Part shown: piece by piece, positions 7,375 through 60,000 of the stretch
Layout of the letters: each line of letters opens with the position of its first letter
Position numbering within the stretch: position 1 is the first letter of the stretch
Assembly: GCA_000708835.1 (NCBI GenBank)
Contig: DF237403.1
Span: 1 to 64,000 of the forward strand
Reading direction: 5' to 3'
DNA length: 64,000 bases
Origin: Klebsormidium nitens
Lineage: Eukaryota > Plantae > Klebsormidiophyceae
Translations under genes and position numbers: made by a program
The notes under the pieces: generated by a model
Database searches by the model: none
What the model saw: only the letters and a program-made list of their open reading frames with translations
Told to the model about the DNA's origin: nothing

Positions 7375-8250
7375 ATTAACGCCGTTTCGGAGCCATGATT
7401 GGCTAAGTCGACGATTGTCCTATTATGCTAGCTCGCCTCTCTAAAGAAGTATGCAGAAATTTACCTACCGCATACTTGTCCTGCAAATTAAGGAAAGCTT
7501 TCAAATTTCTATTCTCCCTGTTCGCAAATAGAATGTGAAAGACTTTTCGAATGTCGCTATAGGCCGGACAATCATAGACAAAATGCCTTTCCGACTCTAC
7601 TGCTTCCAACGTGCACACCTTGCAGAGTCTCTCCTCGCGAGCGATCCCTTGCCAACTCCCTGTTTCGATAGCTAGCTTGTGGGCTCCGACTCCGAATTTG
7701 GCTAGAGTGTCGAAGTACTTGGAGACGCCTATTTCATCTATGAAAGACTCAAAGGAGTAGCCTTCCTTGACATCCTCAAAGTACGTGCAAAACTTTCTGC
7801 CGTACCCCTCTCTTAGATCTTGCATATATGCCATCTCAGACCTCTCTTGAAGCCGCCAGGTTTAGAACACCTATACTCTTATCTGCTGAAACGAGTTCAC
7901 AAGCCTTTCCTACAATCCTCGCATATACCACCCGCCTTCGTTTGCTGCCCACATCTCCTTCGACTCCTCGAATGCCAAGCGGGCCAACCGATTTTCTGCA
8001 AGACTTGCCGTCCGGCTGACAAACTTGAAGACCTGCGCCCAACGTCTGATCACCAAGGGGAACCGACCGAATTCTCCCAAGACGGCCTTGGACAGCGACG
8101 ATTTCCGGACTTTCAACAAATCCCTTAAAAACGCGCGATGCACCTTCTCAGGACCGTCCCCATCGCCGTTCCAACCCCACTCCGGACAGTAGCCGGGGCC
8201 CCAGACCTCCGCTCCATACCCGAGAATTGGGCTAACCAAAATATATATAG
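7375..8250 (-). mobile_element. 5'-truncated, inactivated non-LTR retrotransposon (LINE; RTE-X-like C-terminus by inference)
   Basis: ORFs 7910-8239 and 7403-7834 are in the same frame, separated by three stops. They contain the RT thumb motif LVSPILGYGAEVWG, plus KVHRAFLRDLLKV and GEFGRFPL. The C-terminal CCHC region is GAHKLAIETGSW...REERLCKVC...VESERHFVYDCPAY. Boundaries are approximate; no convincing TSD. Confidence 0.85.
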
Positions 8251-11200: not shown

Positions 11201-11519
11201 GTGCACTGCCAAGCGTTGTGCAAGCCAGCTTTCAGAATGAAGATAAAGTTTTCAGAACTGTGAAGCAAATCTTGGACAAAGCTTCTACCCAGGCTCTGGA
11301 GATCCTGCAAATTAGGTCGTATTACCCTCCTGTCTTCTGAGCTGTTTTTACCCAGGTGCAGACGATGAGAGAATTGTCAATACATCCAGTGTGCTGTAGC
11401 TACTAGCCAGTACTGTATGCTGAACAAGGAGGGGCCTATCTGTACTTGACCTAGGCTTTCTCTTTCACTGGATTGCTGAACAGGAGAGATGTGGTTCACA
11501 GCTTAGACAATTTCCAAAG

Positions 11520-14500
11520 ATGAGCACTAGATGTACGGTTGTTTCCAACCGGCCAATCGGTGCAGGCCTCTGCTTGGAAAGGATTTTTGCAAAGAAGACT
11601 GAGCCGCTCTTGCCCAACTCAAGTCCAGCAATCCCGAATGAAAGCCGGAGAGGTGGTAAAAGGTTCCTCCGGCGCCCCTTTGCCGTGTGCGCATGGTGTC
11701 AACTTTCCCCCTCAGTTTCTGGAGACTGTCAAAGCAGGAAGACCACATGCCAAGTTGCAAGCTTGACACCAGCTTTTCAATCTGGACTGCATAAGCTATC
11801 CGTTCACAAGAGCACAAGACGTCCGGCATCAGTGGCTTCCGTTGCTCCCACAGAGGGTAAAGAAAACGTGGATAATGTCAAAGTCGAAGCATACCTGGAG
11901 CGGATAGCTTATCAGGGACCGCCACCTTATATGGTGGAAGGAGAGGAAGGAGAAGCGCTGGAGGCTTTGCGGAGCCTGCATTGGGCTCACCTTCTGGCGG
12001 TACCTTTTGAGAACCTGAGGTAAGTGACTGGTAATTGCAGCATAATCACAGCGGCCGAATGTTGTTACCCTGCTGTTTGTGCTCGCACTTCACGGATGCA
12101 TTGTAGGGTGACTGTGGCCGATACAAAGAACTTTTCAAGACAGGAGTAGGCGGCTATACTTGGATACATGATTGGCAAGGAGCGTTGCAAGCGCGACATG
12201 GCATTTGGTAAAATCAATCCACTGAAAATGACCGCAGGTGGCCCCATCTTCCATGAAGGCTATGCTGAACTCGGCTGTGCCTGCTTAAGTCAACCTTGAA
12301 GAAGTCCTGTATTGAAATGTTGCAATTTGCATGATTTTTCTGATTTTTCACACCTGATCTTTGTTGAATGATCTATCTATAAGCGCTCCGTACGCTTTTG
12401 GACTGGCCCAATTTGAGCTCTGACAGATGCAGGAAAGGTGCTGGAGGGAGAGAACTTTTCAAGTCTTGACTTCAATCGGCCAAGGTCTGCAGTTTGGGTC
12501 TGGTTGAGTGGACGGTCACTAAAAGATGAATTGACTTGCGTGCAGTGTTCACAACGGGGAGACAATCCAGCTAGACTACGATAAGCTGTACGACAAGATA
12601 GTGAGGCGGAGGAGGGGCGGGTTTTGCTATGAGGTAAGACTTGTCTACGTGTTCTTATCCAGAATTGACTAGACAAGTAGGAAAAGAAGATGGAGAAACA
12701 TACGACTTCTGCGAAGCTTGGTTTGTTGGGGTCAGGGCCAGAGAGTCGAGCCATGTTAGGCAGGTTCATTGGACTTCCCTCCTCTCAGAAAAGTGACCAG
12801 TGGCATGCCTGCTGAATCACATATGGGGGCACCCAAGAGGGTGCAGACTTATAATCTGCTGCGCCATCCACTGCTCTTCTCATAGGAGAGACGTGGGATA
12901 GTGAGCTCGGAGGGGATTACAAGGGACGTAATTCTTGCCAATTGGTTGGTTGTTGGTTTTCCTATGAAGGATGGCTGCACTGCATGGTAAAGAGCTCTAG
13001 GACAAACATATGTGTAGGCGGAAGAAGTTTGAGGATATCATGTATGTGAAAATGACAACCACTGCTTTGTCTAAGCGAGACATTCTAAAATACGGACAAT
13101 CTGTTTCGAAGAAGTCGCAGACTGATCAACTCCGTAACCAATCGCTGCTCCTGTGTTGCAGAACAACGGCTGCTTTGCCTGGCTGTTGCGACAACTGGGC
13201 TACCAGGTCTCCCTCATGTCGGCCAGCGTTTTCCAGCAGGGAGCGCAGGGGGGCCGCTTCGGCCCCGAATATGACCATGTAAGAAACTTGGTCTAGATTT
13301 GGGTTTGGGTTCGGATTTGGGTTTGTATGGGGTCCTTGGTTCCGGTTTGAGTTCGGGTTTGGATGGGTCCTGGTTGGGTTCGAGACTGCCTCCTTTCGGA
13401 CACGACCATAAAGCTGGACATCTGCCTACTCTGCAATCTGCAAAGCGTTGGTGTGGCAAATTTATTCTTGCTTGTGAAATCTAAGAGGGAAAAGATATAG
13501 AGTCGGAAGACTTTCAGGGCACTTGAAAGCGAGTCTATGACTGTCCGGTCTTACAGGTGGCACGTCCTAGTTCTTCTTGAGTATCCTAAGGAAACCAAAG
13601 CCATAGAAGAGTGTTTGCAGAAACTGGTGGACTCGTCGTACGAAAGACGAAAGTTCTCTTCCTTTGTTCCGTTATGAAGCTTCGGTTGCCCTCCGTTCTG
13701 GTCTCCTGAGTCCCATATGTTTGAAAATTGAGATTCTTTGTGCTCACTCAGGCTGAGTGCACACCGCATCAACTGAGACAGCCGCGAAATATCAGTTATG
13801 AACGTTTTCAGATTTCTCCGGCCTCTGTTTGAGAACTCAAACGCAGCACTCAACGTTTACGTCGTGGACTACCGGCCCCAGAGCACGTCTTGCGGCGACT
13901 CTGAACCACTAACTTATCAACATGTGTTGCTTGCAGCTCGTCTTGATGGTCCACATTGGGAAGAAACGGTGGCTTGCGGACGTCGGCTTTGGCAGTAGCT
14001 ACCCCGACCTCCTCGACTTCGACACTCGGGACGAACAGGTAAGGTTCATATCTTTTCCAATATCCCCCCCTTCTCTTCTTCTTCTATGCTACTTTGAAGA
14101 TTGCGTCCGTCCACAACTTGCCCATCAAACGTCCACAACTGCTTTCAACCTTCTAAGGCTTTTCATAGACCAGTTCAGTCCGGATGTTGATTGTCAGATT
14201 ACCGCCTTTCCCGTCTAGAAACATCAACATGTTGCTGGTGCTTCTTTAGAAGCCGCCTTTTGTCAATCGACCCTACTGTCAATCCTCCGAGGGCCGCTGA
14301 CGTCTTGCCGATTCAACATATCTCCAAAACGCTGACGTCATGCTACGTCCACCCCCGCAGGTCCAAGTAACGGGCCGGCACCGCGTGCTGCCGGACATTT
14401 TGCTGCGCGGTTCGGGGGTGTACGTGTACTGGCAGTGGATGCCCCCCCCTGGGAGCAGCGTCCAGGCGCCCGGGGAGTGGCAACCGAGGCACCGGTTCTG

Positions 14501-20700: not shown

Positions 20701-23700
20701 GTTGCGTCAAAAGTGGATACCTGCGGAAACAAGGCAGCCGGGTGTGGGGTCAAAAAGTGTCCCTCAGGGGGCGCAGAGCGCGTTTCTGTGGTGGTAAGGA
20801 GTTTGTGAGCAGTTCGATGCTTTGCTTTTGCGGGAAAGGTGGTGGTTGACGAGGATTCGTAAAGGGGCCAGTTTTTTGTAACCAGAAAACAGTGGACCAC
20901 CCGTTTCAGAAGAGCTCGTGCGAGCTGAACTCGGTACGAGCTACCGAGCGGGCCTTCCGTGCCCGGATTGGATAACCTTTCACCCCTCAAATTGGCTGCT
21001 TAGTTCGACTCAAGAAGAGTCTCACCACACACGCATACTTCCGCCAACAAGCAGACCGTCGTGGAAGAGGATGCAAAATCTTCGAGGTAATGGCAATATC
21101 GAGCATGATGATATGGAACACCAAGGCAGGGCAACCCCTTCAAACGCGTCGCGCTGGGCATATGGTACAGTGGCGAGGTGCCCCGCATTTGGCGTATGGT
21201 ATGGTAGCGAGGTGCACCGCATCTGCTGCTCACCAATCTTCAAGGCGAAATAGTTCAGACGACAAACTTGTTGCGGGTCAACTTGATCACGCTGGTCAAA
21301 TCCACCGTTTACGTCGCTTGGGGGGCGTTAGTACATCGCGCTTAGTCCCACAGCAACGGGAGTTTATCCGCTGCAATTGTCCTTACGGACGGCAAGAGAC
21401 CCTGCAAAAAGCGATTGTGCGCTGCTGCTTACCGTTTTTGAAGGCGAGAAAGTCGAACACGGTGTGGAACATGGAGACCACCATGGTCAGGCCCAGCAGC
21501 CACGGGTTGCCCTCGATGAACACTCTCTGCACAGCACAAGCGAGTACACTGATTAGAAACTTCGAAGTCGAATCATGCATTCCTCCACCGCACCCTCGCT
21601 GGGTTTCTGAGGACTGGGCGTTGCTGCCAAATCGAAATAGCAGGTGTTGTCTGGTAGCAAACCTTCAGAAGCTTTGCCAACAAATCTGATCGCTTGGCCG
21701 TTTTACTTGACACAGATGCTAGCCACGTCCGATCCCCCCTGCTGGCCACGGAGAGCTCGTGTTTTTTCCAGCAATCGGTCAGGCGGCCAGGTGCGACAAC
21801 TGGTGGTACTGACTGACGAGAGAACAAATGACAGGCAACCGCTGAATGTCAGTAATGAAAAAGGTGCGGCTGACCTTGATCTCGTCGGCTTCCCCGTCGC
21901 CCATGCTCCCCATGCTGGCCTGCATCTTGAAGCTCTGGTCCATCTGGACGTACACATTCCACCACCAGGCGCTCAGCGGCGCCAGGAACAAGTCCAGCTC
22001 CAAAGTGGTCGTCGTATCGTTGATGGGCTGCAGATAGTCCTTGAGGAGCCAGAAGTCGTTGATGAAGACGGTCGGGAAGAAGTTGCCGCTCTCGGGCTCG
22101 AAGTCGAGGAGGCCTGTCAGGTGCGCGGGAACGCCGCCCTTGGGGTATCTGCACAAAACGGGATTACGGCTTAACCATGTCTGTTTGTCAGCACTAACAG
22201 AAAGGTCTGAGAGAGAGTTGCCGCTCTCGTTCTCGAAGTCGAGAAGGCCCATAAGATGCGCGGGATCGCCGCCCTCAGGGTACCTGCATTTGTGAGGAAG
22301 TGCTTCTTAAGCAAGCTTGGTTAGGGGCAGGTCAGGGGCACTAGCCCATCAAAAATTCGCAACTCTCTTATTAAAAGGTAGGTACTCCAAATATTCTTTG
22401 ATTTTTCTGAGCCATGCTTGGCTGGGAGCAATGACCCCTGCCAGATATAAGGGGCCAATCACTGCCAGGCCTTATACACTTCGAAGCTCATGAACACCTT
22501 TTCCGACATTCTGCAAACAAGCGCTTTTGTCTCCACAAGGCCACTCACGCGTTGTGATCCTCCACGAGGTTAATTGTCACGTTGGGCCGCCAGAACGACA
22601 CCCACGGCCGCGCCGGCTCGTCCGCCGTCCCCTCTGCCTTCTTCTTCGTCGCCTCCGAGCCAGTGTTCCAGACCACGCTGTCCTCTTCTTCCGCCTCGTC
22701 GTCTGATTCCTCCTGCGCCGGTGTTACCTCGGCTGAGGCTGCCTCCTGCTTCGCTTTAGCAGCCTCGTCGCGGTCCAGCTGCGCTAACTCTGCGTCGCTG
22801 TTCATGGACTTGCCGAGCAGGTTCACGCGGCGATCCACCTTGGGCTTGATGCCGTACTTGTTGAGCCCTGCGATTGTCGACGTCTGTCTCAAGCCAAACC
22901 CTTTTCTAGTTCCATCAAGTCGAAGTAGTTCGTACAACTCTAGTCTGATGTGTTTTGAGAATCACTGCAGACTCCTATTGCAGCCATAGAACAGGAGAAG
23001 AAAATGCTCATGAATCTGTACAGGAAGTCTGAAGCATGTAAATCAGAGCTCCAAACAAGGACTGCTGGACCGACATCAAAAGGGCATGATTGAATCCGAA
23101 CACGAACATCAACCCGACAGCTTTGACCACCTCAAGTCAAGTCTGTTGATTGATGCAGGAATACAACCTTGTTCAGAATAGTCTCCTCCATGAATGCACT
23201 TACGGAAGGTTTTGCTGAATGCTGAGCCTCTTTCAAAGCTCGCATCCTCAGGGTTTGGTGAGTAGCCGGATCGAGCGAAGAATGCGTGGCCCCACAGTGA
23301 GCCGTTGTTCATCACAGCCTACACGAAGATAGTAGTTTGTTTCAAAATCAAAAGAAACTCCGTAAGCTCAGAGCCCATTTACCAACTGGAGCCCCAAAAG
23401 GGGTAGCCTCAGAACAGGCCACCAGTGAAGCAACACAAAGCACATCACGCACCAGTAGTCTCTCACTTGTGAGCGCAACCAAAAGCAGGCACTTTGGATT
23501 CCACCAGGCCTTCAAGTGCATGTTCACATCACAGAAGGAGATGTGCTCAGATCCGCCAGCAATTCATAGAGAACGAGTAAAAGATTTGGTGGCTTGCCTC
23601 GCTGGGGTGGTACGTCCAGTGCAGTTGCCTGCTGGCGGCTGTGTCTTGCGTGCTGTATGGCACGTCTTTCTCATGCCAGATCAAACTGCTGGCATCGTTA

Positions 23701-30887: not shown

Positions 30888-33800
30888 ATGGTTTCATTGG
30901 GCAGCTTCAAGCAGCAGAGCAATGCATTTCAGCACTTGCCACTGACTGGTGTTGCTGGCTCCTGTGTCAGAACGCTGCCAATTGTGAAGGTGCCCCCTTG
31001 TCAAAGAACACGTTATGAAAGCATCAGGCAGCAGTGTGTTATGCTCAATGCGAGAACCAGGTCCAAATTTGCTGGAACAGGGGGTGCATTGCAGAACCAT
31101 CACAAGCAATGCCTCATGGAGCAAATCTCTGCACTGACGGCCCATGTGCCGACCAGTCCAAAAAGCCATGCACCTCTCAATACTAGCATCAGCACTCTGG
31201 TTGGCATCAACCCATTCACATGCCAAAGTTTCAGCAGGCGAGCTAGCGATAGATCTGCGAGGCCATCAAAACTCCTGCTTGGTAGATGCTGTGATCCAAG
31301 AACCCAGCGAGGAAGCAATCTTCGCTGCATGATGGATGAACCCAAAACCCAGCCCAACGAAGAGCCCACGCCTTCTTTGGTCGCCCGCTTCTTCAGATTG
31401 TTTTCCAGGAAACAGCAGGCAGGCTCTCCATCTCAAGAAAGCAGCCTTAAAAGTGTGAGCACGGAAGGCCAATTTCAGAAGGATTGCTATCCATGTGTAT
31501 GATTTGATTATCCAAAAAACAAATCAAAGTTTCTGTGTTGAGTGGATGTGTTTTCCCGCAGGAGAGACCAGAGCTGCTTGCGAGAAGGCACTGAGCTTGA
31601 TCCTAACACATACTATTGAGAGAGTGGTCCTCTTTTGCTTGTTGTATCACTCTTTTAATGTTTGGCCAGTTTCTCTTTTTCTTGTGTATCACGGCACACA
31701 AGCTACACCAACTGCTTTGAAGGTGGACAGGACGCCAGTCCTTGCCGAATGATATGGCTTCAGAAAAACGTCTTCTTTTCAGGAAACTATTGCATTGGGG
31801 ATGATACAAACACTACGATTGTATGCAGGAGCTTCGTGCTGGCCCTTTTGAGATCCACCTCCGAGACGTCAGCAGAGTGTATGGGAAGCGAGCTGTCGTG
31901 GATGGGGTCAACCTGAACGTGAAGCAGGGCGAAGTGGTGAGAGTTTCCTTTCTATTCCAGTAGATATGAAGGTCTGAGGGACTTGAAAGCTGGACTCTCT
32001 TCACAACCTTCATGATCACACTTGGAAGGTTTTCCGCTACGTTGCTGCTGATAGCTGATAGAGCCACGCCAGAAGATAAGACCTAGGACGGACTGAGGAG
32101 CCGTTGCCAGACTGCAAAAAGAAGGCCAAGCGACCTTTTCTCAATCGGGATCCCTCTGCCTTTGTTCTCTGCTATCACGCAGAGAACACTGGGGCCTGTG
32201 CTTGGTCCATTTTGGTCGATGTAGCCTTCTCCGTCTGGACCCAAAGTCCATCCGGATCGCGGATCCAGGTTCAAAGATTGGCTCTACAGGGTACTCCGAA
32301 CACTTGGAAAGAGACTCGGACAGTTTTTGGAAGGCCCAATTCCGAACGGTACTCATATGGTCTGCTGACAACTCTCAACAATCCTCCGAGCAACTCAAGA
32401 CGATTTTCAGACGTCCTTTTCGAAGCAATTTGGTCGATATGACGGCGTCTCAGGACTATATCGATAATGCGGATACCCGTTCAGCAGAGCCTGTCTTCTG
32501 CCTTTTTTCAGGTCGGGCTGCTAGGTCCGAACGGCGCGGGCAAGAGCACCACGTTCAACATCACGGTGGGGCGGGAGCGCCCGTCTCAAGGCTGCGTGCT
32601 GCTGAATGGGCGGGACATCACCGCTCTGCCGCTGGCCGCACGAGCCAGGCTCGGAGTCGGCTACCTGACACAGGTCCGTAATCTTGCCAGAGACCGTGAC
32701 CGTGGTCGAATCGCCGTCGAATCGCTTTGCGTGATAAAGCATGGAGGGAGTAATTTTCGGAGGAAGTGACTTCGTTCATCTACAACGTACAACTTTGCTC
32801 AAGAAAGTGTTATCGAATCTGTTCGAAGTGTCTCACACAAGACCGCAGAGGTTGTCTCTACAGGGGCCACATGGAGCCCCATGTGACGTTGTTTGATGTC
32901 GACTTCTCGAAGCTTTCATCGCGCCCCTTGAAAGTGGCCGCTGATCGCAGGCTGGGAGTGCTCTTCATGATTGATCTCGAGTTTTCGATTTCTCGAGGCC
33001 TGTCGCGAAGTCCTCTGTACGAAGAATAGCGTGTCGGCAACTCGCTTTGAGAAAACCAATTAAGAACGAGCGAAATCTTTCAGTATAGGAAAACAATCAT
33101 CGGGAGATATCTCGACCCCCCGAATCGTTCATAAAGCTAAGGGCTTGGGCTGTGTGGTTCAGCTCGTTGGCTTCTTTCATGCATGTTTCTTGTTGTTGTG
33201 CTTTTGAAGGCTCAGGCTTTCCGTTATCAGTCATGACTCATCCACCGTTGGCAGATGCTTTCCGCGCACTTTTAGCCGTTGGCATTCTAGCAGACGAGGA
33301 TTCTGACTCTTGACAAGGCCCGCCCTACTTATGGGCAACTTTGTTGCCTCTCTGGAAACCTTCACGTTCTGCAATGAGGGCGCTTTTCACGGCCAACGAT
33401 CCGTTATCACCCATTGCACTCCGGACCTTCCTTTTTAATCATCGCCGTTTGTCTTGCCTCTTTTTACTTTTCCATCCTCTTTGCGTGAGCCCAGTACGTC
33501 CACTCCTAGAAGCAAATTCATTACATCTTCCCTGTCGATCTTTACCAATTGTCAAATTTTCGTAGTTCTTCCATTTCCCCACATCACCTTGCCGGCCCGC
33601 TATGTGCTCTTCCGCTCTCGTGCCAGGCCCCTCCTTACTCAAAATCAACACTCCTTTTGCAGGAGCCCAGCGTGTTTCGGGGCCTCGTTTCGTCCCTGCT
33701 TGTCCAATTCATATACCAGCTTACACTGAATTCCGCCAATTAATCATTTCGTCTCTTCCCTCCCCCGGCGCCCATCGAAGTCAAAGGCTCCATGAGGCTC

Positions 33801-35835
33801 CTCGTCAGCCAAAAACGTCTATAGTTTCGCAGGAGCCCAGCGTGTTCCGGGGCCTCTCAGTGCGCGACAACCTGCTGCTCATCCTCCAAGAGACGGGCGT
33901 CCCCCGAGCGGAACACGCGGGGCGGACCGAGGAGCTCCTAGCGGAATTCCGGCTGACGCACGTGCAGCACACGAAGGGGGCGGCTCTGTCGGGAGGAGAA
34001 AGACGGAGAACGGTAAGTCGACGTTCGTTCTCTTTCTTTGGTGTTTTCTGTTCCTGAAGCAGAAGGTTGGACTGATTGATCTGAAACTGTCCAACTAGAT
34101 GAACCAGTCCCTTCTGACGTAAAATGCGAAACGCCTCCAGGTTTTGTCCAGGATTCCCTTGTGGAGGGTGTCGCTTCAAACTTGCTGGATCGAGCTTAGC
34201 TTCTTGCGTTCTTTTGCAGGAGCTCGCGCGAGCGCTCGCGTCGAACTGCTCCGGAGGCCCGCCGAGGATTCTGCTAGTGGACGAGCCTTTCGCAGGGGTG
34301 AGCGACGGAACCGCTGCCAAAGTCAGGCGCTTATGGGCAAGGCCCTTAATCTGGTCAACCTTATAGCCTTATAATCAAAACTCGTCATGTAAGGTTTCGT
34401 GATAGTCGTCTCAACGACGTTAGCGAGTTCCATAACATTCGAGTTTTCAACGTTAAGGAAAACACCCATGGTCCAATGGCAGCGGACGCTCCGAAAAAGC
34501 CAACACGCATCAGAGGTCTCGTCACCATTCGCTCTCGCGTCAGCCAACGTCTTGAAACGTCTTTAACCCTTTTCTGATCAACAAAAGCATACGCCCTTCC
34601 GAGTTCTTCTTGGGGTCTCTAAGGAATTGGATCGGTGCTTACTTCTGAAAAGTGAGTGTGATTAGATTGAGTGGGCGAGGGAGACGGAGCTGACGTTGTC
34701 CGGCGCTCTCTTTTGTGCTCAGGTGCACCTAAGGACCGACCAAAGGCAGGAATGACCCGTGCAGTAGTGCAGAAAGGGAAACCGTAGTGCAAGGGGAACC
34801 CTCATTTTGAGTGTTGATTTGTGACTCGTGAAGAAGCTCGTCCGTTGATAAATTCTTAATATCATTGACGGCTGATACTGCGTTTTGTGCAGTCTGAAGC
34901 GCGCGCTTGCGCGGGGCCAGCAAGATTTACTCAGATTCTGAATCACGACTTCTCATAATTGGACACGTGATATCAAGCCTTTGGAAATTTTCTCGCATAG
35001 AAACCAGCTTGTCCTTTCTGCCTGCCAAGCAGTTACCACACGCTTTCGTCACTGAAAGAGCACTGCCACATGTGCACTCAGACCCAGGGCCACATGTGCT
35101 TTGACGAATCACCTACGGCAAAGCCGTTGTACGTCCACGTAGCCGTTTGCGGGAAGGACGTTGAAGGTCAATTGGAAACGTTTTCTCATGTATGCGACCT
35201 GTGCTCTCAGCCCCATTTCCGCCGTTCCGCCATTCCGCAGGTGGACCCGATCGGCGTGGCGGAAATCCAGGCCCTGCTGCGGAAGCTATGCGACGAGCTG
35301 CACATGGGCATCCTCATCACCGACCACAACGTGAGCTCTTTGTTGATACGTCATCCCGGCTGTTGATGACGCCAGCAAGTCCTGACAGGAGTCCAAGAAT
35401 GCTTTGCCTTGGCACCAAGCTGTGCCGCCGAAGTGGGCCGCTGACTTCCAATTCGCGTCTACGACGCGTCTCACCCCACCTCGTTCAATCTGACATCCTC
35501 CTCTTCCTCTTTAACTGAAGAGGTTTGAAAACGTTCAACCGAGACTCAGGTCTTCTTCGAGGGCGAAGTCGTTGGCTCAAAACTGACTTGAGTTGCTCGA
35601 AGAAGGAGGTGATTTCAAACCTGCTTTCTTGCCCGACCAGGTAACGGAGACGCTCAAGATCTGCGATCGTGCGTACATGGTGTTTCAGGGGCAGGTAATG
35701 GCGCAGGGGTCGCCGGAGGAGCTGGTCCGGAATCCCTTCGTCCGGCAATACTACCTTGGGGAAGGGTACAAGCGTCCGGAATCGCAAATGAGTGACGAGA
35801 GCTTCATTGGTTTGAAACAGCCGCCCACATCATAA
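30888..35835 (+). CDS. lptB: LptB-type ABC ATPase (LPS-export family) with a ~195-aa N-terminal extension, about 459 aa, 7 exons
   Basis: Exons 30888-31454 (less certain), 31829-31936, 32512-32673, 33833-34012, 34220-34297, 35241-35330, 35641-35835. Walker [14 protein letters not shown]-loop [15 protein letters not shown], signature LSGGERRR, Walker B/D-loop [13 protein letters not shown], switch [10 protein letters not shown]-terminal VRQYYLG. This motif set is characteristic of LptB. Confidence 0.9.
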
Positions 35836-42344: not shown

Positions 42345-45300
42345 ATGGCGTCTGCTTCCACAGCGGCGGCGGCAGGTGCTCGTTGCACGTGCTTTGAGCC
42401 GCCGCTGTCTCAACGACATCAGCAAAAGTTCGCGGCCAGCTCGCAGCCTTTCTTATATGCAGACAAGAGTCAATTGAGGAGCATTACTAGACAATTGCAT
42501 CAAAATGTCGCAGGCAATACTCCCCTTTCCTCCATTCTCTGGCGGGGCGGTCGGGGCCCGAAACGAAGGCCCCGAATGCATGGGAATCCTCGGACACCGG
42601 TTCAAGTCAGCGCTTCCCGCTCAGGGCGTACTAGCACCACTCAAGAAGAAAGCGATGATGAGGAGAAGCCTCCGCTATGGGGCATTGTGCTCAAGGGCTT
42701 CTTGGGGACGCAGAACAAGGTGGGGGAGAAGGTCATGGCGTCGCTGCTCAAAACGACGCAGGCGCCCATCGGGATCTACGTTTCGGAACCGGTCACGGCT
42801 CTGCACCGGTTGGATCCAAGGGTGAAGCAGGTGAGGCTGGGGGCCGTTTTGCAACTCAAAAATCTTTCGTGTGGCGCTGTGAAAAGTACATTGATTGGCA
42901 GGTGCACAAACTCATGGAAGCGAACGGGTTTCCCCCTTAAAAAAGGCGCCAAGGTCATCAGATAACACATAAGGGTGGTGGTGCACCCATTGACAGCCTC
43001 TTTCAGTCCTTTGACTCTCTTTCGAGGGAAAACTGACATGGTTCTTACGGATCTTTAGTACTAGAAAAGGAATAAACATACCGCCGGACAGTTTTTGGAA
43101 TCAACAGGATCAATCGGGGACAGTGGTTGAGCGCCGGCCGGCTTAGTTATATCCGATTGGTTCAAAGCTCTGCTCTAGGCCCATGCAGTGCGTGCTGGTT
43201 GCTTCTCGTCCACCCGTTGCGGAAGAAGCTAGAGCTTCATGTAAGAGCTATCCAGTGGGTCTATTCCTGACAAAGTTGACACAAGCTGATATGATCAGCT
43301 CTTGCACCCTTGGAAGGGGGCATGCGTTGATATGGGGCGCGTTGCGACCTTTGAATGAGTCCAAGGTCCCGTGCATGAAACTCTTTGCTGGTAAACATGG
43401 AAGCTTTCTCTGCAAAGTTTGGAATCGAGCACCACCGTAATCTTGTCAAAGGCTTTGCACAGAATGGGATTGGCGCACCAATCAACCAAAACAAGCGCTG
43501 GCCAAATTAGTGGCAATTGTGGCAAGTGCCCACTTTCTTTCCTACCTACTTAGCGGACAATTTCCATTATCCATAAGTCCTTGACATGGCTTCTTATCTG
43601 CGCACGTGCCTGTGTCTCATACTTCTTCTTAATTGACCCTCTCTTGTACACTTTTGCCCTCTTTCAAATGTAACATCCACCACAATTCACCTTAAGCCCC
43701 CGTATGGCTGTTCGCTCTGGTAAGCTGAACCAAGTTTCGGCCCACTTAAACCAGTCCTCCTGAAACCTTCTTAACGTCCTCAACCCCGCTGACCCCTCTT
43801 TAGTCCGGCTAAATCTTTTCAACCGTAATCCTGCTCACCCCTTTTCTAAATCCTACGCACCCCTCCTCCATCCTGCTCACCACGTCTTAACCCTTCTCAC
43901 CCCACCTTAACCCCCTGCAGGTGTGGCTCTTCGTCCTGATGCTTTGACTTTAGGTCCCCCCATTTGACCTTTACTTCTAGACCCTCCCTAACCTCCTTAA
44001 CTCCCCTCAAAACCTGCAGGTGTCGCTATTTGCCCTGGTGATGCAATCTACGGTTCCCCCATCCCGACCGATCCTCCTCACCTCCTCATATGTGCTGACC
44101 CCTCCTTTAACCCCCTGCAGGTGTGGCTGTTCGCCCTGATGTTCCTAACCAAGGAATTCCCATTGTGACCCCAACAAATCCCCTAAACTCCGTAAGTCTC
44201 CTTAACCTCGGCAGGTGTGGCTGATCACACTGCTGTTCTCAACTAAGGTCTTACCTTGTTCTGACCCCTGACCTCCCCCTAACCGCCTCCAATCTCCTTA
44301 ACCCTGCAGGTGTGGCTGTTCGCCCTGATCTTCCCAAACCTAAGCTTTACCCATTCTGACCCCTGCCTAACCTCTCCCTAACCTCCGTAGATTCCTTAAC
44401 ATCGGCAGGTGTGGCTGATCACCCTTCTGTTCTCAAACTAAGGTCTTGCCCTTTTCTGACCCATAACCTCTCCCGAATCTCCTTAACCCTCCTTAACAGG
44501 TGTGGCTATTCGCGCTCATGCTCCTCCCCGCCCGCTCCACCCTCGCTGTCCGCATCGGCCTCGTCTCCGGCGTGCTCCTCCTCTCCATGCTCTGCCTTCC
44601 CCGCCGCCTCTGGAAAGCACAGCTCGGCCCCCTAGTCTTCCTCTGTTCATTTGTCTTCGTAATGACGGCGTTTACCGCGGACGGGGTGGCGTTGCTAGCT
44701 CAGCCCAAGTCTCTGCCACCCCCCCAGATCGGGCTGCCGGAGATTCCCCCCGCGACGGGGGGGTACCGTTATGTGCTGTTCAGCTGGTGGGTGTTCCGGG
44801 TGACGAGGAAGGGGCTGCTACTTGCGAGTAGTACGGCGAGTTTGGCTTTCATGGTGAGCGGAACTGTTCGTTTTCGCAGCCATTTCATCGGTTCATTCTT
44901 CCGCTGTTGCGGAATGGTTCGCTGCTTTTCCATGGAATGCCCTTTCGAGAAAGGGGCTGCTGCTGGCGAGTAGTACGGCGAGTTTGGCTTTCATGGTGAG
45001 CGGAGTTCTTTCTTCCAGCAACTTTATCGGTTCATTCTTCTGCTCTTGCGAAATGGTTTGTTGCTTTTCCTGGAAGGCCGTTTTGTGAAAGGGGCTGCTG
45101 CTGGCGAATAGTACGGCCAGCCTCGCGTCTATGGTGAGAGTCAACTCGAGAAAGAAGCTACGATGTTGTTCAGGTGACTGCATTGGGACAGGTAAGGGTG
45201 GTTGAGAGATTGGGTCGGCAGGGTTCGAAGTCTGTACTTCTTTGGCTTGTATTGTACTTCGTGTTCATCGACAAGCTTAGTAAAATCTCTCTTGAGTTTC

Positions 45301-48300
45301 ATTTTGAGGAGGGGCTGGTCCTTTTTACGCTTCATCTGGGCTCTCGGTTAGTCTTGCTGGAACGGTTTGTTGTATTCCTATCACATGCCGTTAGCTGGTG
45401 TTACTGGGAAAGAAGAAAAGGAGAACGAGAGTTAATCAGCATTATGTCAGCACTATGGACGTTTCAGCTAGATGTAAGCATGGCGCGCTTAGAAGGTGGC
45501 AACAACCACCTCTCACAAAAGTAATTGAATTGTCGCCGCCAAGTTCCGGAGTCAACAGTATGTGCTTGACAGGGCGAGACTCGTTGTAAGATGCCGAGAC
45601 CGAATTATTGATGTGTGCACTCGTCAATCAACTGACATGGGACTCTGACCCACCTTGCACTGTGCCCTCACAAAAGTCTCACGTTGTGTTGCTGTCGAGA
45701 CCAAGGTTCGAGGCAAGTCAATCAAAAATTTCGGGCCTGTTTTGCATGTGCCCTTACAAATCAGGAGAGAGGCATCATTCGTCAGCCTCCTTTCGAGAGC
45801 AGCACGTTGGCTGCGCCTTCGGGTTTGGATGTTCGGATTGTCAAAAAGCCGAGCTTCTCTACGGAGAGCCCATTACCCTTTCCACTCTCGAGTTGCAGAT
45901 TGGAGTGGAGGGTCGCCCCTTCGGACTGCTGCCTTGTAAGTAAGTGGGCGCTGTCCTCGGCTACAGCAGAATTGGAGGAAAATCGTCTTCTCCCTCTACA
46001 AACACCCAAGACCACGTCTTTTGGAATGTGTTAAAGACCATAACCTTGCACCTGAAAGTAGTGAACCCAAGCGATAGATTAAGCTGCCGCTCTATCGATG
46101 CTCTACAGGTGATGCAGAGCGCCAACCTGTGCCTCACGACCACCACCCCCGAGGAGCTTGTCGCGTCGCTGCGCTGGTTCCTGCAGCCGCTGCGCCTGCT
46201 GCGCGTCAACGTCGCAGAGATCGCGCTCACGCTGCTGCTCTCGCTGCGCTTCACGGGGCTCGTCTTCGATGAGGTAATTTTCTGCATGGTGATGTTTGAG
46301 TGCTGAAATTGGCTGTTGACAGCTTTAAGTTCACGTTGACACTGAGGGATTTTAAAGATGCTGGCGTGCTTACGCTGCTGCTCTCGCTGCGCTTCACGGG
46401 GCTCGTCTTCGATGAGGTGAGGCCGTGATCCGGGTTGAAATCAAGGAAGATAATGATCAGCCGGTTAACAAGGTAAAAGCACTAAGGCGGGTAGGACTAG
46501 TTTGGTAGTTGGGGTGGGTATGGGTACGGAGCAGGTAAGTTTTTTGTGTTAGGGGTTTTTGTGTTTGTTGGAGCTTATTATCTTGGCTTGTTACTATCTT
46601 TCTGGAGTTTCATGTGATTGGACTGGACGAGTGAACGGCCAAGCAATTGCTTTTGATGAATTTGACGGTTTGGCTAAGGTGAGGAGGCACTTTTTGGTTG
46701 TCGAACCGGTGGATTTTGACAATCAAAGGCTCAAGATTGTGCTTGAGCCTCAAAAGGTGAGCATCTGAGAACGATGTTGCGTTTCGCTGATCTACTTGCT
46801 GCAATTGACGGGACTGGTTGTCGATGAGGCGGCATAAATTTTGTGCGCCCTATTTCGGACGATTTTTTGAATCCGGAATGGCACACCCCAAACTTGGTTA
46901 ACCCAGTCTGCGGCTACTCGTGCGCGTCGGTTTTCGATGTCGCGGTAAAAGCACCATCAGGAAACGAGCCGCGTGCGACATGTGTTACACAAGCGCGTGT
47001 GCGGCCAGAGATTCGTTCACATAGTTCAATGGGCAATTTCGGGTTTGCCGTCCAGACTTGTAACTTCCGACATAGGGCGCACCAGTCTTAGCGCATCTGG
47101 AGTGTCCAATTCAGAACGTAGGAAATCGAACGGCCTTTGCCGCTGCTTCTGCTGTGTCAAGGGGGCTCGGCTATGACGCACCTCGAATTGGAACGTCGAA
47201 ATTTGCTTTTTACCTTCCAACGGTTGAAATTCCTTTCCCTTGCGGGGCTCTTTTGTCATGACTTGAAATTAGAACCTGAGCCGTCTGAGAAGTGGGCTTG
47301 GACGATCGAACGGCTCAAGCTCGTTTTTATGGGGCGGTAATCGAGGCCCTTTTTGCCCCTCGATGCGGCCCCGCTTGTGGACCTTGTGTGCAGAAAGATC
47401 ACAAGCTTCCAAGGGGGAACCTACATTCAAGATTGGGCCATCAACGGTGCACCTTTCGTACAACTCTTAGACCAAGCGGTTCCCCACGTCTGATGAAACC
47501 CACGTGCTCCATCGACGGTGCAGGTCCGCAACCTGGCGCTCGGCGTCGTGGCTCGGGGGGTGGACTGGAAGAAGCTCGGCTTTGTCGGCACAACGGACAG
47601 TGAGTCGCCGGAAACCGGAAGCAGACTAACAGAACGGAAGTGTGATGCTCGCATAGTCATCGCTTGTACCGTGTCGTCGAACCACCAACATGCGTGCCTC
47701 TTTCATTTAAGGAAATGCTAAGCAGACCTTGCCTGTTTCGAAGGGCTCTACTTCTGGAAGCAAACGTCACTTGGTGCAGCGGCTGTGGCCTTTCTCCGAT
47801 ATCAAAAGAGACTGTCCGGCAGTAGCAGCGTCCGTCAACAGTATCGAACTTTCCATTTCTCGCCGTGACTGTTGGCGAAGACTTCAAAATGAACGCCGGA
47901 AGGGACTTTAATTATCACGCGGGATCGATCAAAGCCCAGAAAGCGCATAGAGCGGCCCGTTCCGCTGGTTATTCCTATCATTCTCGCCGTCAATCGCGCG
48001 AACTGTGCTCTCCGCAGTGATGGCCGGGCTAGCGGGGCGGCTCTTTCAGAACCTTTTTGCGCAGGCGGATCAGATTGCACAGGTGGGTGTCGGATTCCGC
48101 CTCTGTCGCTTGCCGTGTGATGCTTTCCCCTCGTTACCCCACTTTACTGGCGACATTCGGGACGCCGGTTCGTCGAGTTGCTTGCTTGAACGGAGGGGAC
48201 ATGCTGCTGGATTGCTCTAGTACCAACCATGCGGTGCGCATTGCCTTCTTGTTCCAATCGAGCACCTTTGACTGCTTTCAATTGTCATTCTTCGAAATAT

Positions 48301-57000: not shown

Positions 57001-60000
57001 TAATCTCCAACCCCTCGAGAATCTCAATCCTGCTGCTCTTCTCTTCTGTCCAGATCCTGTCGGGCAAAGAGGAGGCTTGCCTGATCTATCTGGGAGTTCT
57101 GCAAGCCCTCCCCGTCTTCGAAAAAACCGTCCTGACCGTCGATATCGGAGGAGGCTCTACCGAATTCGTCGTGGGCCGGCAAGGGGAGCCGCTTTATGCC
57201 ACGTCGCTGAAGCTCGGGCATGTGCGGTTGACGGAGCAATTCCTAGGGAGTGGGAATGAGCCCCTGCAGAGGTCGCAGGTGGGGGTGTGAACACTTTGCG
57301 AACGGCGCTTCGAAGATTCGCTGCTTCTCTGCTGACTTTCAAGACGTTATATGCAATGAGTTGCCGCATCTTCCGGTCGAACGTTTCATTGCAAAGGGTG
57401 GACAAGGGATGAAGCGCTCTTAGCAGTTCCTATTGCCAAAGACGGTGGTATCGTTTCGGGCTTGTCGTGAAAATTTCCTCCGAGAACATTGAACGACAGG
57501 GCAACCCAGGAAGATCCTGTGAGCTACTGCTTTTCTGCACATGTTGAAATGTCTGCAAGTCGTCGTTCAGATTCCCAGTCCCTGCGCCGGTACGCCTGTT
57601 TTGCGCCACGAGTGTATACTGAGCGATCCAGGCTACCAGTTTTTTTGGGGATGCTGTCGAGAGGGTCAAAACGTTTGCTTTACTTTTTGAAAAGCGCCTT
57701 TGGCAAAGGCGTCCGTTGCCATATCCTTCTGATCGCACCTGAGAATCCGAAGGACCTCAGGACATCGCGTAAACTCAATCTTTCTCACGGTCTCTTTGCC
57801 CCATACTGACCATCTTTACGCTCTTGGAAATAAGCTAAGTTACGCACAAGTGTTCCATTGCAGATTGACGACCTCCGGCGCCACGTGCGGATAATGCTCG
57901 CGGACTCAGGCGTCCTTGACGCAGTCAGCAACCGGCACTTTGATGTCGCGATCGGGAGTTCTGGGACGATTGAAACGATTGCGGAAATGATTCATGCCAA
58001 CGTGGAACCAGAGGGCGTGGAGGGTACGGAGGTGGACAAGAAGGTGGCCGATAAGAAGGGGCGGCAGTTCAAGGAGGAGGAGTTCACCAAGGAGCAGCTG
58101 CAGGGTGACGGTCTTTGCTTTTGCTTTTGTACCTACTCTGCCTGAGACTCTCTTTTCGTTTTTGTTCCTTGTCCGGAAAGGGTGATGAATTGTGACTTAG
58201 TTCTTGCACCTCTTCTAATATGGACTTTTCCTTTTCTTTTCCGTCTTTCTTTTGAGTGTCCAGAAGTTTGAGTACCAACGAGCAGCTTGCAAAATGGGGA
58301 CTTTTTGTTTGCTCGTTTTTCCGCTCTTGTGTGTCTTTCTTATCGCTCTTAATGAGTTGACGTTTTCGTTTGGTCACCAGCTTTCGTTGGAATTGACTCC
58401 TCTCCTGCACGCTTGACTGGCAGTCCTTTCTTCTTGCCGCTTGTTTCCTTGAAGCGTGTCACCGTTTTGTTAGATTTCCAATTTGTAGTGCCGACCGGCT
58501 ATACTTTTTATCTTTCTTAATCCGCTGAAAGCCACGTGATTGTTTTGATCGCAGCCGTGGTGAAGAAGATCCTGAAGGCCAAGACGAACGACCAGCACCT
58601 TTCTTCTTTTGCTGAAAGCCATGTGACTCCTTCTGTTCCCAGCCGTGGTGAAGAAAATTCTGAAGGCCAAGACGAACGACCAGCCCCTTTCTTTCTATGC
58701 TGAAACCCATCTGATGACTTTGATCGCAGCCGTGGTGAAGAAGATTCTGAAGGCCAAGACGAACGACCAGCGCGCCAAGATCCCGGGGCTGCAGAAGCAG
58801 AGGGCTGACGTCATCGTGGGGGGAGCGATCCTGCTCGAGGAGATCTTTGAGGCCATGAACATCGACAAAATGAAAGTGAGGACGGGTCATGATTGGCCGA
58901 CTCGTAAAGCTCAAATTCTATACAAGTCGTTTGATGGCTCTGCTGTTCTTCAGACTGAACGTTCAACAATCGCCTTTCCTCTTCCAATATTTCCAAGGCT
59001 CGTATGCGGCGAAATATTTTTAAGGATGTCGAGGTGTGCGTGGAAGATTGCCAAGTGGAATCTAAGCGTTGGTTCTCCTTTTCATCGGCGCTCAGATTCA
59101 CGGCGATTGTTCTCAAACCTCTCGCCTCTTTAGAGGTACTCCCGTCCTGTTAGAACCTTCTCAGCGAGACCGTGAGCAACTCTGATCTTGGTCTGTGCTA
59201 ACGTCAGGTAGCACATGTTCTGATGTCATTCCCTTCCTGACAGGTGTCGCCGTACGCCCTTCGGGAGGGCGTCATCGTTGACGCGCTGTCGCAGACCAAC
59301 GAGAAACGCAACCAACCGCTGGATTCTTTGACCACAGTCCGTGCTGACGTCAGGACATTTAGTTACTGACGTCACTTCTCTCATGACAGGTGTCGCCGTA
59401 CGCCCTTCGGGAGGGCGTCATCGTCGACACGCTGTCGCAGACCATTGAGAACTTCAACCAGACGCCCGACATCCGGCGCGCTTCGATCCTCAATCTGGCC
59501 GCGCGGTTCAACACCGACCGCAGAATGGATTCCGCCATCCACTCCGCGGACCTCGCAAAGGCAAGCGCCTCCGAACCCGTTACTCGTCTCCAACGTCATG
59601 AATCTGCTTTGCTCGGATCGTTACAGTCTGCGGAAAGGTCTGCCAGTTCCTAGAAAGTCTGGTGTTTTCAAGTACGTCCGTCAATGAAATCTAGACGGGA
59701 GTAGTTTGACACTAACCTTGGGAGGTTGCTCGGAAGATGCTTTAGAAGTGTGTCGAAAAGGTCTCCAGACTTCCGCTGGAATATCAGTGTTCGCCTTTAT
59801 TCGCTCTTCGTGCATCAGGTTTAATGAAACTTGCAGGCGTGCGGTAGGGGCACCCTGCCACAATGAAGCCCTGGTGTAAACTGGAGCAGAGCACTGACAG
59901 AGTACCGCTCCTTTCGACCATATGCTGGTGAAGCAATCTGATGACCTGGTTGGTGCCCTTTCCGTGCAGCAAATTCTGTGGGGCATGCAGACGTGCCGCA

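Follow-up and report, generated by a model that had tools for sequence, protein, structure and literature searches.

The gene at positions 30,888 to 35,835 (forward strand) of contig DF237403.1 of the alga Klebsormidium nitens is almost certainly the nuclear orthologue of cyanobacterial lptB, and this confidence covers both its identity and its cyanobacterial origin. In Gram-negative bacteria, LptB drives the machinery by which the outer membrane is built, and chloroplasts descend from such bacteria. The explanation preferred here is that the gene derives from the lptB of the plastid ancestor, that its product would carry a transit peptide and be imported into the plastid, and that it would power an LptB2FG-like extractor there. 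As a whole, this explanation is given a probability of roughly 0.55. The window that was analysed comprises positions 1 to 64,000 of the contig, and all coordinates refer to it.

The gene consists of seven exons separated by six introns, which are all of the GT...AG type and in phase 0, and it encodes a product of 459 aa. Its parts are the following:

30888..31454, + strand: exon 1, N-terminal extension of 189 codons, followed by the donor GTGAGC at 31455
30888, 31041, 31116 and 31329, + strand: candidate starts in exon 1 (M1, M52, M77 and M148, respectively, the last being the start of the public model)
31829..31936, + strand: exon 2, first beta-strands of the ABC domain, with the adenine-stacking Tyr in SRVYGKR (TIGR04406 positions 3-29; alignment with E. 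coli LptB)
32512..32673, + strand: exon 3, Walker A (GPNGAGKST) to the Gln of the Q-loop (TIGR04406, 67.6 bits, positions 30-83)
33625..33686, + strand: 62-nt direct copy, lying within intron 3, of the junction between that intron and exon 4; it comprises a decoy acceptor and 24 nt of exon sequence
33833..34012, + strand: exon 4, the helical subdomain, which contains the groove residues (EPSVFR) and the LSGGERRR signature (TIGR04406, 54.7 bits, positions 84-143)
34220..34297, + strand: exon 5, an insertion followed by Walker B (LLVDEPFAG)
35241..35330, + strand: exon 6, D-loop (VDP) and switch His (TDHN) (TIGR04406 match)
35641..35835, + strand: exon 7, C-terminal LptB domain (VRQYYLG), 20-aa tail and stop codon (TIGR04406, 47.6 bits, positions 195-238)

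Exon 1 has no Pfam or NCBIfam match. For each of the ABC exons the best NCBIfam match is TIGR04406 (LptB), the profile positions being colinear (3-29, 30-83, 84-143, 166-194 and 195-238), and every PDB match of exon 4 alone is an LptB. The motifs that the original prediction had regarded as intact are all found, three of them running across exon junctions: QEPSVFR is divided after its Gln between exons 3 and 4, DEPFAGVDPI after DEPFAG between exons 5 and 6, and TDHNV after TDHN between exons 6 and 7. The fourth, YYLG, lies within exon 7. GC3 in the ABC exons amounts to 0.775, which is counted as a sign of selection. A public GenBank protein of K. nitens (P0167; 312 aa) has the same introns as the 459-aa model and starts at Met148. 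It is 100% identical to residues 148-459, the junction between exons 1 and 2 included, so an independent gene model uses the same splice sites. The neighbouring genes on DF237403.1 (CLPTM1, LysM, DAD and MMADHC) are eukaryotic.

The family assignment was made with the public protein (residues 148-459) as query against NCBIfam TIGR04406, the LptB equivalog, which has a curated cutoff of 240 bits. The protein scores 301.6 bits, and the next non-LptB family 164.6. In a PDB sequence search, the top 15 matches are all LptB or LptB-like ATPases. The same holds for the top 23 PDB matches (TM-score 0.86-0.96, rmsd 1.3-2.5 Å) in a fold search with an AF2 model of the residues 148-459 form (pLDDT 86), in which the C-terminal 20-aa tail has a low pLDDT. 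The profile score above the cutoff, the LptB fold and the eukaryotic neighbours thus agree with the prediction of a nuclear, intron-containing LptB. The ATPase motifs are intact, i.e., the Walker A Lys, the Q-loop Gln, the signature, the Walker B Glu, the D-loop and the switch His. Among 56 aligned sequences, F137, Q132 and S185-G187 do not vary and K89, E214 and H247 hardly vary; the groove residues F137 and R138, equivalent to F90 and R91 of E. coli, are invariant or nearly so. These E. coli residues mediate the binding of LptB to the LptF and LptG coupling helices. By its motifs, all key ones being kept, the protein looks like a catalytically competent ABC ATPase. It is 46-49% identical to the E. 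coli and Vibrio LptB of the LptB2FG(C) complex (PDB 4P31, 6MJP, 6MHU; TM-score 0.92-0.96, rmsd 1.3-2.3 Å), and the counterparts of E. coli Y13, K42, Q85, F90, R91, E163 and H195 are conserved (numbering as in the LptB literature). The E. coli and Vibrio proteins differ in being without the cyanobacterial insertion described below, and their LPS extraction has been shown experimentally, whereas the function of the algal protein is predicted.

The cyanobacterial origin was examined in a careful maximum-likelihood (ML) tree that comprised the streptophyte proteins and 63 bacterial LptB sequences, the latter covering more than 12 phyla. In this tree, for which the cyanobacteria were sampled as closest matches only, with the early-branching Gloeobacter and Gloeomargarita not knowingly included, streptophyte LptB is monophyletic (100/99) with Mesostigma branching first, cyanobacterial LptB is its sister group, and both together are split from all other bacteria (100/99). 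Identity to cyanobacteria is 60-64%, vs 45-56% to other phyla. With LptB of Nodularia sp. NIES-3585 (P0267) and Chamaesiphon (P0175), this identity extends over the whole ABC domain and the motifs are the same. The C-terminal VRQYYLG is shared, as is a 4-residue insertion located after the ARALA helix and ahead of Walker B, the streptophyte version of which is 2 aa longer. The features that had suggested a cyanobacterial type and endosymbiotic transfer, ERRRTELARALA..GP, (E)TGVPR and VRQYYLG, are indeed cyanobacterial, and the phylogeny against bacterial LptB, with its grouping at 100/99, supports both suggestions. Compared to its cyanobacterial counterparts, the algal gene lies in the nucleus and is interrupted by six introns, and its product has, besides the longer insertion, 41-189 additional aa at the N-terminus and a tail of 20 aa at the C-terminus. 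The lptB gene of Nodularia lies in an operon, flanked by an LptA-like gene on one side and an LptF_LptG permease gene on the other, whereas the K. nitens locus is without such neighbours. An exon-4-only pattern scan of GTDB, seeded with exact peptides, returned Geobacter, Acidobacteria and similar soil bacteria, with no cyanobacteria among the matches listed. It is dismissed as counter-evidence because of this seeding; full-length comparisons and trees put cyanobacteria at the top.

Orthologues occur in Mesostigma (Mv22498), in the Zygnematophyceae (Spirogloea, Mesotaenium, Netrium and Closterium) and in mosses (Sphagnum and Ceratodon, KAG0590094), so that the guess of the original prediction about charophytes and mosses was right. 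They are 61-72% identical to the K. nitens protein, form one well-supported clade with it and have an NCSGGPP-type insertion and partly common intron positions. Two positions are shared with Closterium (the introns before exon 3 and after exon 4) and one with Ceratodon (the intron before exon 4), which points to long nuclear residence. The N-terminal extensions, by contrast, show no sequence relationship to one another, with lengths of 12-99 aa in the models. Among the matches listed, the only eukaryotic homologues of at least 319 aa are those of Spirogloea, Netrium and Closterium, the rest being long bacterial forms. The 336-aa N-terminus of Spirogloea was rejected as a presequence, since it corresponds to a D123 domain that has been fused on in the gene model; all three Spirogloea models have this fusion. 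Physcomitrium, liverworts, hornworts and vascular plants apparently do not have the gene, as judged from the matches listed, and any function is thus dispensable. Altogether, the sequence comparisons give good support to an endosymbiotic transfer of the gene from the plastid ancestor, which took place before the diversification of the streptophytes. Since then the gene has been passed on vertically, gaining spliceosomal introns.

The question of targeting depends on the N-terminal extension. Upstream of Met148, 147 codons are free of stops (P about 0.0012). Residues 1-145 contain 4 D/E where the local base composition would give 10 (P=0.024), whereas the S+T and R+K counts equal those expected of a random ORF at that composition. 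Of the leader composition as originally described, acid depletion stands, and the richness in Ser, Thr and Arg was rejected as a sign of a transit peptide. GC3 of the upstream ORF is 0.51, i.e., without codon-position GC bias, as for non-coding DNA, but leader peptides of K. nitens are alike in this respect. Such periodicity is uninformative as a coding test for leaders, as illustrated by the neighbouring CbiQ gene, with 0.53 in the leader vs 0.786 in the mature part. The latter gene is built in the same way, its acid-poor leader of low GC3 preceding an acidic patch, and its public model, too, is clipped at an internal Met. Its Arabidopsis counterpart, ABCI12, is presumably a chloroplast protein. 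An exact look-up of the 204-aa exon-1 ORF gave no record, and hence no independent call of the long leader.

From Met148, the N-terminus of the public model is acidic and does not resemble a transit peptide. The orthologues of Mesostigma, Netrium and Closterium do have transit-peptide-like N-termini, with an MA... start, an S/T/A/R-rich composition and few acidic residues. Those of mosses are short and less plastid-like, the one of Sphagnum being amphipathic and basic; a Sphagnum transcript contig contains the extension and the ABC domain within one mRNA. For K. nitens, the long form, with a presequence of approximately 190 aa, is plausible but unproven. A transit peptide is probably present, longer than the public model allows and starting at M1, M52 or M77, and these sequence features make organelle targeting of the protein fairly likely.

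According to the preferred explanation, the protein would be imported into the plastid via this transit peptide and, as a dimer, would drive an LptB2FG-like extractor of the inner envelope. The extractor would push a glycolipid, either lipid A-like or another envelope lipid, toward the outer envelope. Lipid A-like molecules have been reported in plants; to our knowledge, LPS itself is not known from plastids. The outer-envelope receivers would be LptD-family barrels (TGD4, LPTD1), which are known in plants. Barrels of this family are located in the chloroplast outer envelope (PMC3565376; bioRxiv 10.64898/2026.07.15.738633). Taken separately, the presence of an LptFG-type lipid extractor in the plastid envelope is a tentative proposal. 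More doubtful is the wider idea that streptophyte algae and some mosses run a cyanobacterium-derived, LptB2FG-type inner-envelope extractor feeding outer LptD barrels, a relic pathway comparable to plastid peptidoglycan that would have been lost repeatedly, vascular plants included.

The alternative that survives best, although it is considered unlikely, is that LptF/G have been lost and that LptB now serves a different membrane partner or acts as a soluble ATPase, outside any Lpt-like pathway. No genes for LptF/G, LptC, LptA or LptD were found within 10 kb of lptB in K. nitens, Ceratodon or Closterium, and this counts in favour of an orphan or re-partnered ATPase. The patchy retention of LptB across streptophytes among the matches listed, the public K. 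nitens model without a convincing targeting peptide, the streptophyte-specific lengthening of the insertion by 2 residues, the long branches and the D123 fusion in three out of three Spirogloea models point in the same direction. Nevertheless, F137 and R138, which form the groove for the LptF/G coupling helices, have stayed invariant or nearly so and the protein still scores as an LptB equivalog. Moreover, ABC ATPases without a cognate permease would be expected only rarely to last for hundreds of millions of years.

Secondly, the protein could be mitochondrial rather than plastidial and serve a lipid A-like pathway. The Lpx enzymes are reportedly mitochondrial in Arabidopsis, and the Sphagnum N-terminus (MLKFAAERLQCFETLKLQRVVHVRKLMV) resembles an amphipathic basic helix. 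This location is nonetheless improbable given the cyanobacterial ancestry of LptB, the chloroplast transit-peptide-like leaders of Mesostigma, Netrium and Closterium, and the resemblance of the K. nitens leader to the one of CbiQ, whose ABCI12 counterpart is presumably a chloroplast protein. Lastly, bacterial contamination, recent horizontal transfer or a decaying pseudogene, to which the bacterial nature of the closest non-eukaryotic relatives and the soil bacteria of the exon-4-only scan could be taken to point, is refuted by six spliceosomal introns, some at Closterium or Ceratodon positions, by the eukaryotic flanking genes, by a monophyletic streptophyte clade whose branching order resembles the species tree, by the intact frame and motifs with strong exon GC3 bias, and by the exact-peptide seeding behind the soil-bacteria matches listed, full-length comparison ranking cyanobacteria first.

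For a plastid-located LptB, a known system offers a parallel. TGD3 (ABCI13), a component of TGD1,2,3, is a lipid ABC ATPase of bacterial, MlaF-like type in the chloroplast inner envelope, coupled to the LptD-like barrel TGD4. It is a nuclear-encoded soluble nucleotide-binding domain (NBD) that drives the movement of lipids between the envelope membranes, and algal LptB may, by analogy, work alike. The ABC family of TGD3 is a different one: for the algal protein, MlaF models lie far below LptB, with 17.9 bits for exon 7 alone and no place among the top 25 families for the whole protein.

The identification as such is not new, as both GenBank and UniProt carry the LptB name by automatic annotation. 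The public K. nitens protein is called "lipopolysaccharide export system ATP-binding protein" in GenBank, and the Sphagnum orthologues are named LptB in UniProt/UniRef. Calling the gene a candidate for an undescribed system was thus an overstatement. Searches of the literature turned up no paper on LptB in eukaryotes. The genome paper of Klebsormidium and an ABC inventory of Mesostigma do not mention LptB, and a literature match for "LptG" was a typo for LTPG20. The biology of algal LptB therefore appears to be undescribed in the searchable literature.

Chloroplasts are thought to keep only an LptD-like barrel (TGD4/LPTD1) alongside a motor of another kind, the Mla-type TGD1,2,3. The presence of a conserved LptB, apparently a functional one, in mosses and early-diverging streptophytes suggests that, in some lineages, part of the original Lpt engine outlived endosymbiosis by a billion years. 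The gene is directly testable in transformable carriers, e.g., Closterium and Ceratodon. If the permease partners are retained as well, LptB would define an undescribed route of plastid envelope lipid traffic in these organisms and would provide a candidate transporter for the lipid A-like molecules of plants.

The lptB gene of Klebsormidium nitens, at 30888-35835 on the forward strand of the window, consists of seven exons that together encode a conceptual LptB product of 459 aa. The exons of the spliced model are:

30888-31454, forward strand, lptB exon 1
31829-31936, forward strand, lptB exon 2
32512-32673, forward strand, lptB exon 3
33833-34012, forward strand, lptB exon 4
34220-34297, forward strand, lptB exon 5
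35241-35330, forward strand, lptB exon 6
35641-35835, forward strand, lptB exon 7

All six introns (207-1159 nt) are GT...AG introns in phase 0, with a pyrimidine-rich tract before the AG. The LptB motifs quoted in the original prediction were all found intact, and several of them, i.e., Q/EPSVFR, DEPFAG/VDPI and TDHN/V, are complete only after splicing at the slash. Residues 148-459 of this model match a public K. nitens protein of 312 aa, P0167, at 100% identity; P0167 starts at Met148 (31329). Since this independent public model uses the same six introns, it supports the predicted joining of exon 1 to the ABC exons. P0167 maps to scaffold DF237403.1 of assembly GCA_000708835.1, where contig and window coordinates coincide, and the neighbours of lptB there encode CLPTM1, a LysM protein, an alpha/beta hydrolase, MMADHC, DAD and a CbiQ-type permease. 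These neighbours, together with the scaffold of P0167, identify the window as nuclear DNA of a streptophyte alga, and with the six spliceosomal introns they confirm a nuclear, intron-containing gene.

Intron 3 contains a 62-nt direct copy (33625-33686) of positions 33795-33856, which is 77% identical overall and matches at 28/29 of the last 29 nt. Its template spans the end of intron 3 and the first 24 nt of exon 4, 170 nt downstream of the copy. The copy creates a decoy 3' splice site (ttttgcag/GAGCCCAGCGTGTT...), use of which would lead to a stop after about 26 codons. Partial exon copies that recall this one occur near lptB in Closterium sp. Yama58-4 (locus L085), where 19 codons from the start of the Walker A exon are repeated about 150 nt upstream of that exon (11279-11335) and 10 codons of the last exon are repeated past the stop (12569-12598).

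Elsewhere in the window, exon-sized ORFs match Ppx/GppA phosphatase (58645-59133, forward strand, 32 bits) and CLPTM1 (21779-22937, reverse strand, 78 and 24 bits), and both belong to ordinary neighbours. A 143-aa ORF at 7403-7834 on the reverse strand (…ERLCKVCTLEAVESERHFVYDCPAYSDIR…) has no Pfam match, and resembles the Cys-rich C-terminus of ORF2 from a non-LTR retrotransposon. No tRNA genes or Rfam families were found in the window.

The spliced 459-aa sequence was used for local BLAST and trees, and single exons or P0167 stood in for it in the remote comparisons. Each ABC exon alone has the LptB equivalog TIGR04406 as its best NCBIfam match, at colinear profile positions, and all PDB matches of the exon-4 peptide are LptB or LptB-like chains. 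The whole P0167 protein reaches 301.6 bits with TIGR04406, for which the curated cutoff is 240, and no unrelated ABC family exceeds 164.6 bits; the cutoff is also passed by the orthologues from Ceratodon, Sphagnum, Closterium and Mesostigma. By sequence, ATPases of the LptB or LptB-like kind take the best 15 places among its PDB matches, with identities of about 48%. An AlphaFold2 model built from a 56-sequence alignment (mean pLDDT 86) has LptB or LptB-like chains as its first 23 fold matches (TM-score on target 0.86-0.96, rmsd 1.3-2.5 Å), and the predicted LptB identity is thus borne out by both profile score and fold. Alignment to E. coli LptB shows that the adenine-stacking Tyr, Walker A Lys, Q-loop Gln, groove Phe-Arg (F90/R91 in E. 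coli LptB), Walker B Glu and switch His are all kept, and these residues are invariant or nearly so across the 56 sequences. Judged from sequence and fold, the K. nitens protein is a conserved, intact LptB-type ATPase that carries an extension at its N-terminus. The identification itself is not new, as the gene is already in GenBank, named as a lipopolysaccharide export system ATP-binding protein, and Sphagnum orthologues are named LptB in UniRef. A literature search found no paper discussing eukaryotic LptB; neither the K. nitens genome paper nor a Mesostigma ABC survey mentions it.

When exon 4 was compared with 1.8 billion representative proteins, the matches and subsequent cluster look-ups led to moss and streptophyte-algal proteins, and a Ceratodon query then led to P0167. 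With the full-length Ceratodon LptB, the best bacterial matches are all cyanobacterial, and the K. nitens protein is 60-64% identical to cyanobacterial LptB versus 45-56% to that of other phyla. Two ML trees, one quick with 126 sequences and one careful with 72 (LG+C20+F+G4 PMSF), give the same picture. All nine streptophyte sequences fall into a single clade (ultrafast bootstrap 100, SH-aLRT 99) with Mesostigma as first branch (97/88), and streptophytes and cyanobacteria, the latter sampled as best matches only and with early-branching lineages not knowingly included, are split from all other bacteria (100/99). Cyanobacteria have an insertion of 4 residues after the ARALA helix and ahead of Walker B, and streptophytes have it too, extended by 2 residues; this common insertion further supports the cyanobacterial affinity. 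The features that had been likened to cyanobacterial LptB (ERRRTELARALA..GP, TGVPR and VRQYYLG) prove to be cyanobacterial in the same alignment, and the cyanobacterial type assigned to the gene is upheld by tree, identity and indel. K. nitens has introns in common with Closterium (before VGLLGPNG and after GGERRR[T/A]) and with Ceratodon (after GYLTQ). Tree, indel, partly common intron positions and identities together establish one ancient transfer to the nucleus followed by vertical descent, which confirms the proposed endosymbiotic gene transfer.

LptB is carried by the algae Mesostigma viride and K. nitens, by the Zygnematophyceae Spirogloea (three copies), Mesotaenium, Netrium digitus and several Closterium strains, and by the mosses Ceratodon purpureus and several Sphagnum species. 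Among the top matches of Ceratodon LptB there were none from Physcomitrium, Marchantia or other liverworts, Anthoceros or other hornworts, Selaginella or other lycophytes, ferns, seed plants or chlorophytes. This absence from a ranked match list, as distinct from a genome search, suggests patchy retention and repeated loss. All three Spirogloea muscicola models (P0002, P0317 and P0318) have a D123 domain (PF07065) fused to LptB; the fusion is either genuine or an effect of adjacent genes being merged in the same way at three homeologous loci.

The presequence is the weakest part of the finding, and a long leader is plausible. From the ATG at 30888, directly preceded by TGA, the frame is open for 147 codons to Met148 (P about 0.0012 for local composition), and residues 1-145 contain 4 acidic residues where 10 are expected (P=0.024). 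The public start, Met148, coincides exactly with the onset of an acidic patch, which would be unusual at the N-terminus of any targeted protein. Chloroplast-transit-like leaders are present in orthologues with complete-looking N-termini, i.e., those of Mesostigma (MALASTILLLTPRHLS...), Netrium (transcriptome) and Closterium. Against a long leader count its GC3 of 0.51 (0.775 in the ABC exons), i.e., no codon-position bias, its S/T and R/K contents, which equal random-ORF expectation, and its size, as 147-190 aa is long for a transit peptide. The leader has no family match, and the exon-1 ORF product has no exact copy on record. Translation could start instead at M52 (31041) or M77 (31116), leaving 96 or 71 aa before the acidic patch. 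Of the long presequence originally predicted, the open, acid-poor frame stands, and the Ser/Thr/Arg content is no more than random. In a moss, an extension of about 50 aa joined to the ABC domain is real, since one transcript-like Sphagnum contig (L084; Logan SRR12193049, 1508 nt) carries both in an uninterrupted 299-aa LptB ORF, and the frame has a stop 23 codons before the ATG.

A neighbouring gene offers a comparison:

42345-45835, forward strand, CbiQ/EcfT-type permease gene (PF02361 in the public model)

Its public start (42576) is Met78 of an ORF with an in-frame ATG at 42345. The leader of about 100 aa is transit-peptide-like (MASASTAAAAG...) and acid-poor, followed by an acidic patch and the mature part; GC3 rises from 0.53 over the first 100 codons to 0.786 beyond them. 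This is the layout of lptB, including a public model clipped at an internal Met, and having the same architecture next door counts in favour of the long lptB leader. Clipping of low-GC3 presequences may be systematic in public K. nitens models. The Arabidopsis counterpart of this neighbour is the chloroplast protein ABCI12. Overall, the K. nitens LptB is probably organelle-targeted.

A plastid Lpt-like system is a hypothesis in which LptB would be imported into the plastid, form a dimer on an LptF/G-like permease of the inner envelope and power the extraction of a glycolipid toward the outer envelope. It is reasonable because Nodularia lptB is flanked by an LptA-like gene and an LptF_LptG permease gene, and because plants keep the LptD-family barrels TGD4 and LPTD1/At2g44640 in the outer envelope (PMC3565376; bioRxiv 10.64898/2026.07.15.738633). 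In K. nitens, Ceratodon and Closterium the genes within 10 kb of lptB include no LptF/G permease, though linkage would not be expected anyway. Alternatively, LptB may be an orphan or re-partnered ATPase, or it could be mitochondrial and tied to the plant Lpx pathway. A pseudogene is excluded, and contamination or recent horizontal transfer is ruled out by tree, indel and partly common intron positions. With its role predicted from sequence, the K. nitens LptB offers a clean lead, open to testing, on how the plastid envelope evolved.
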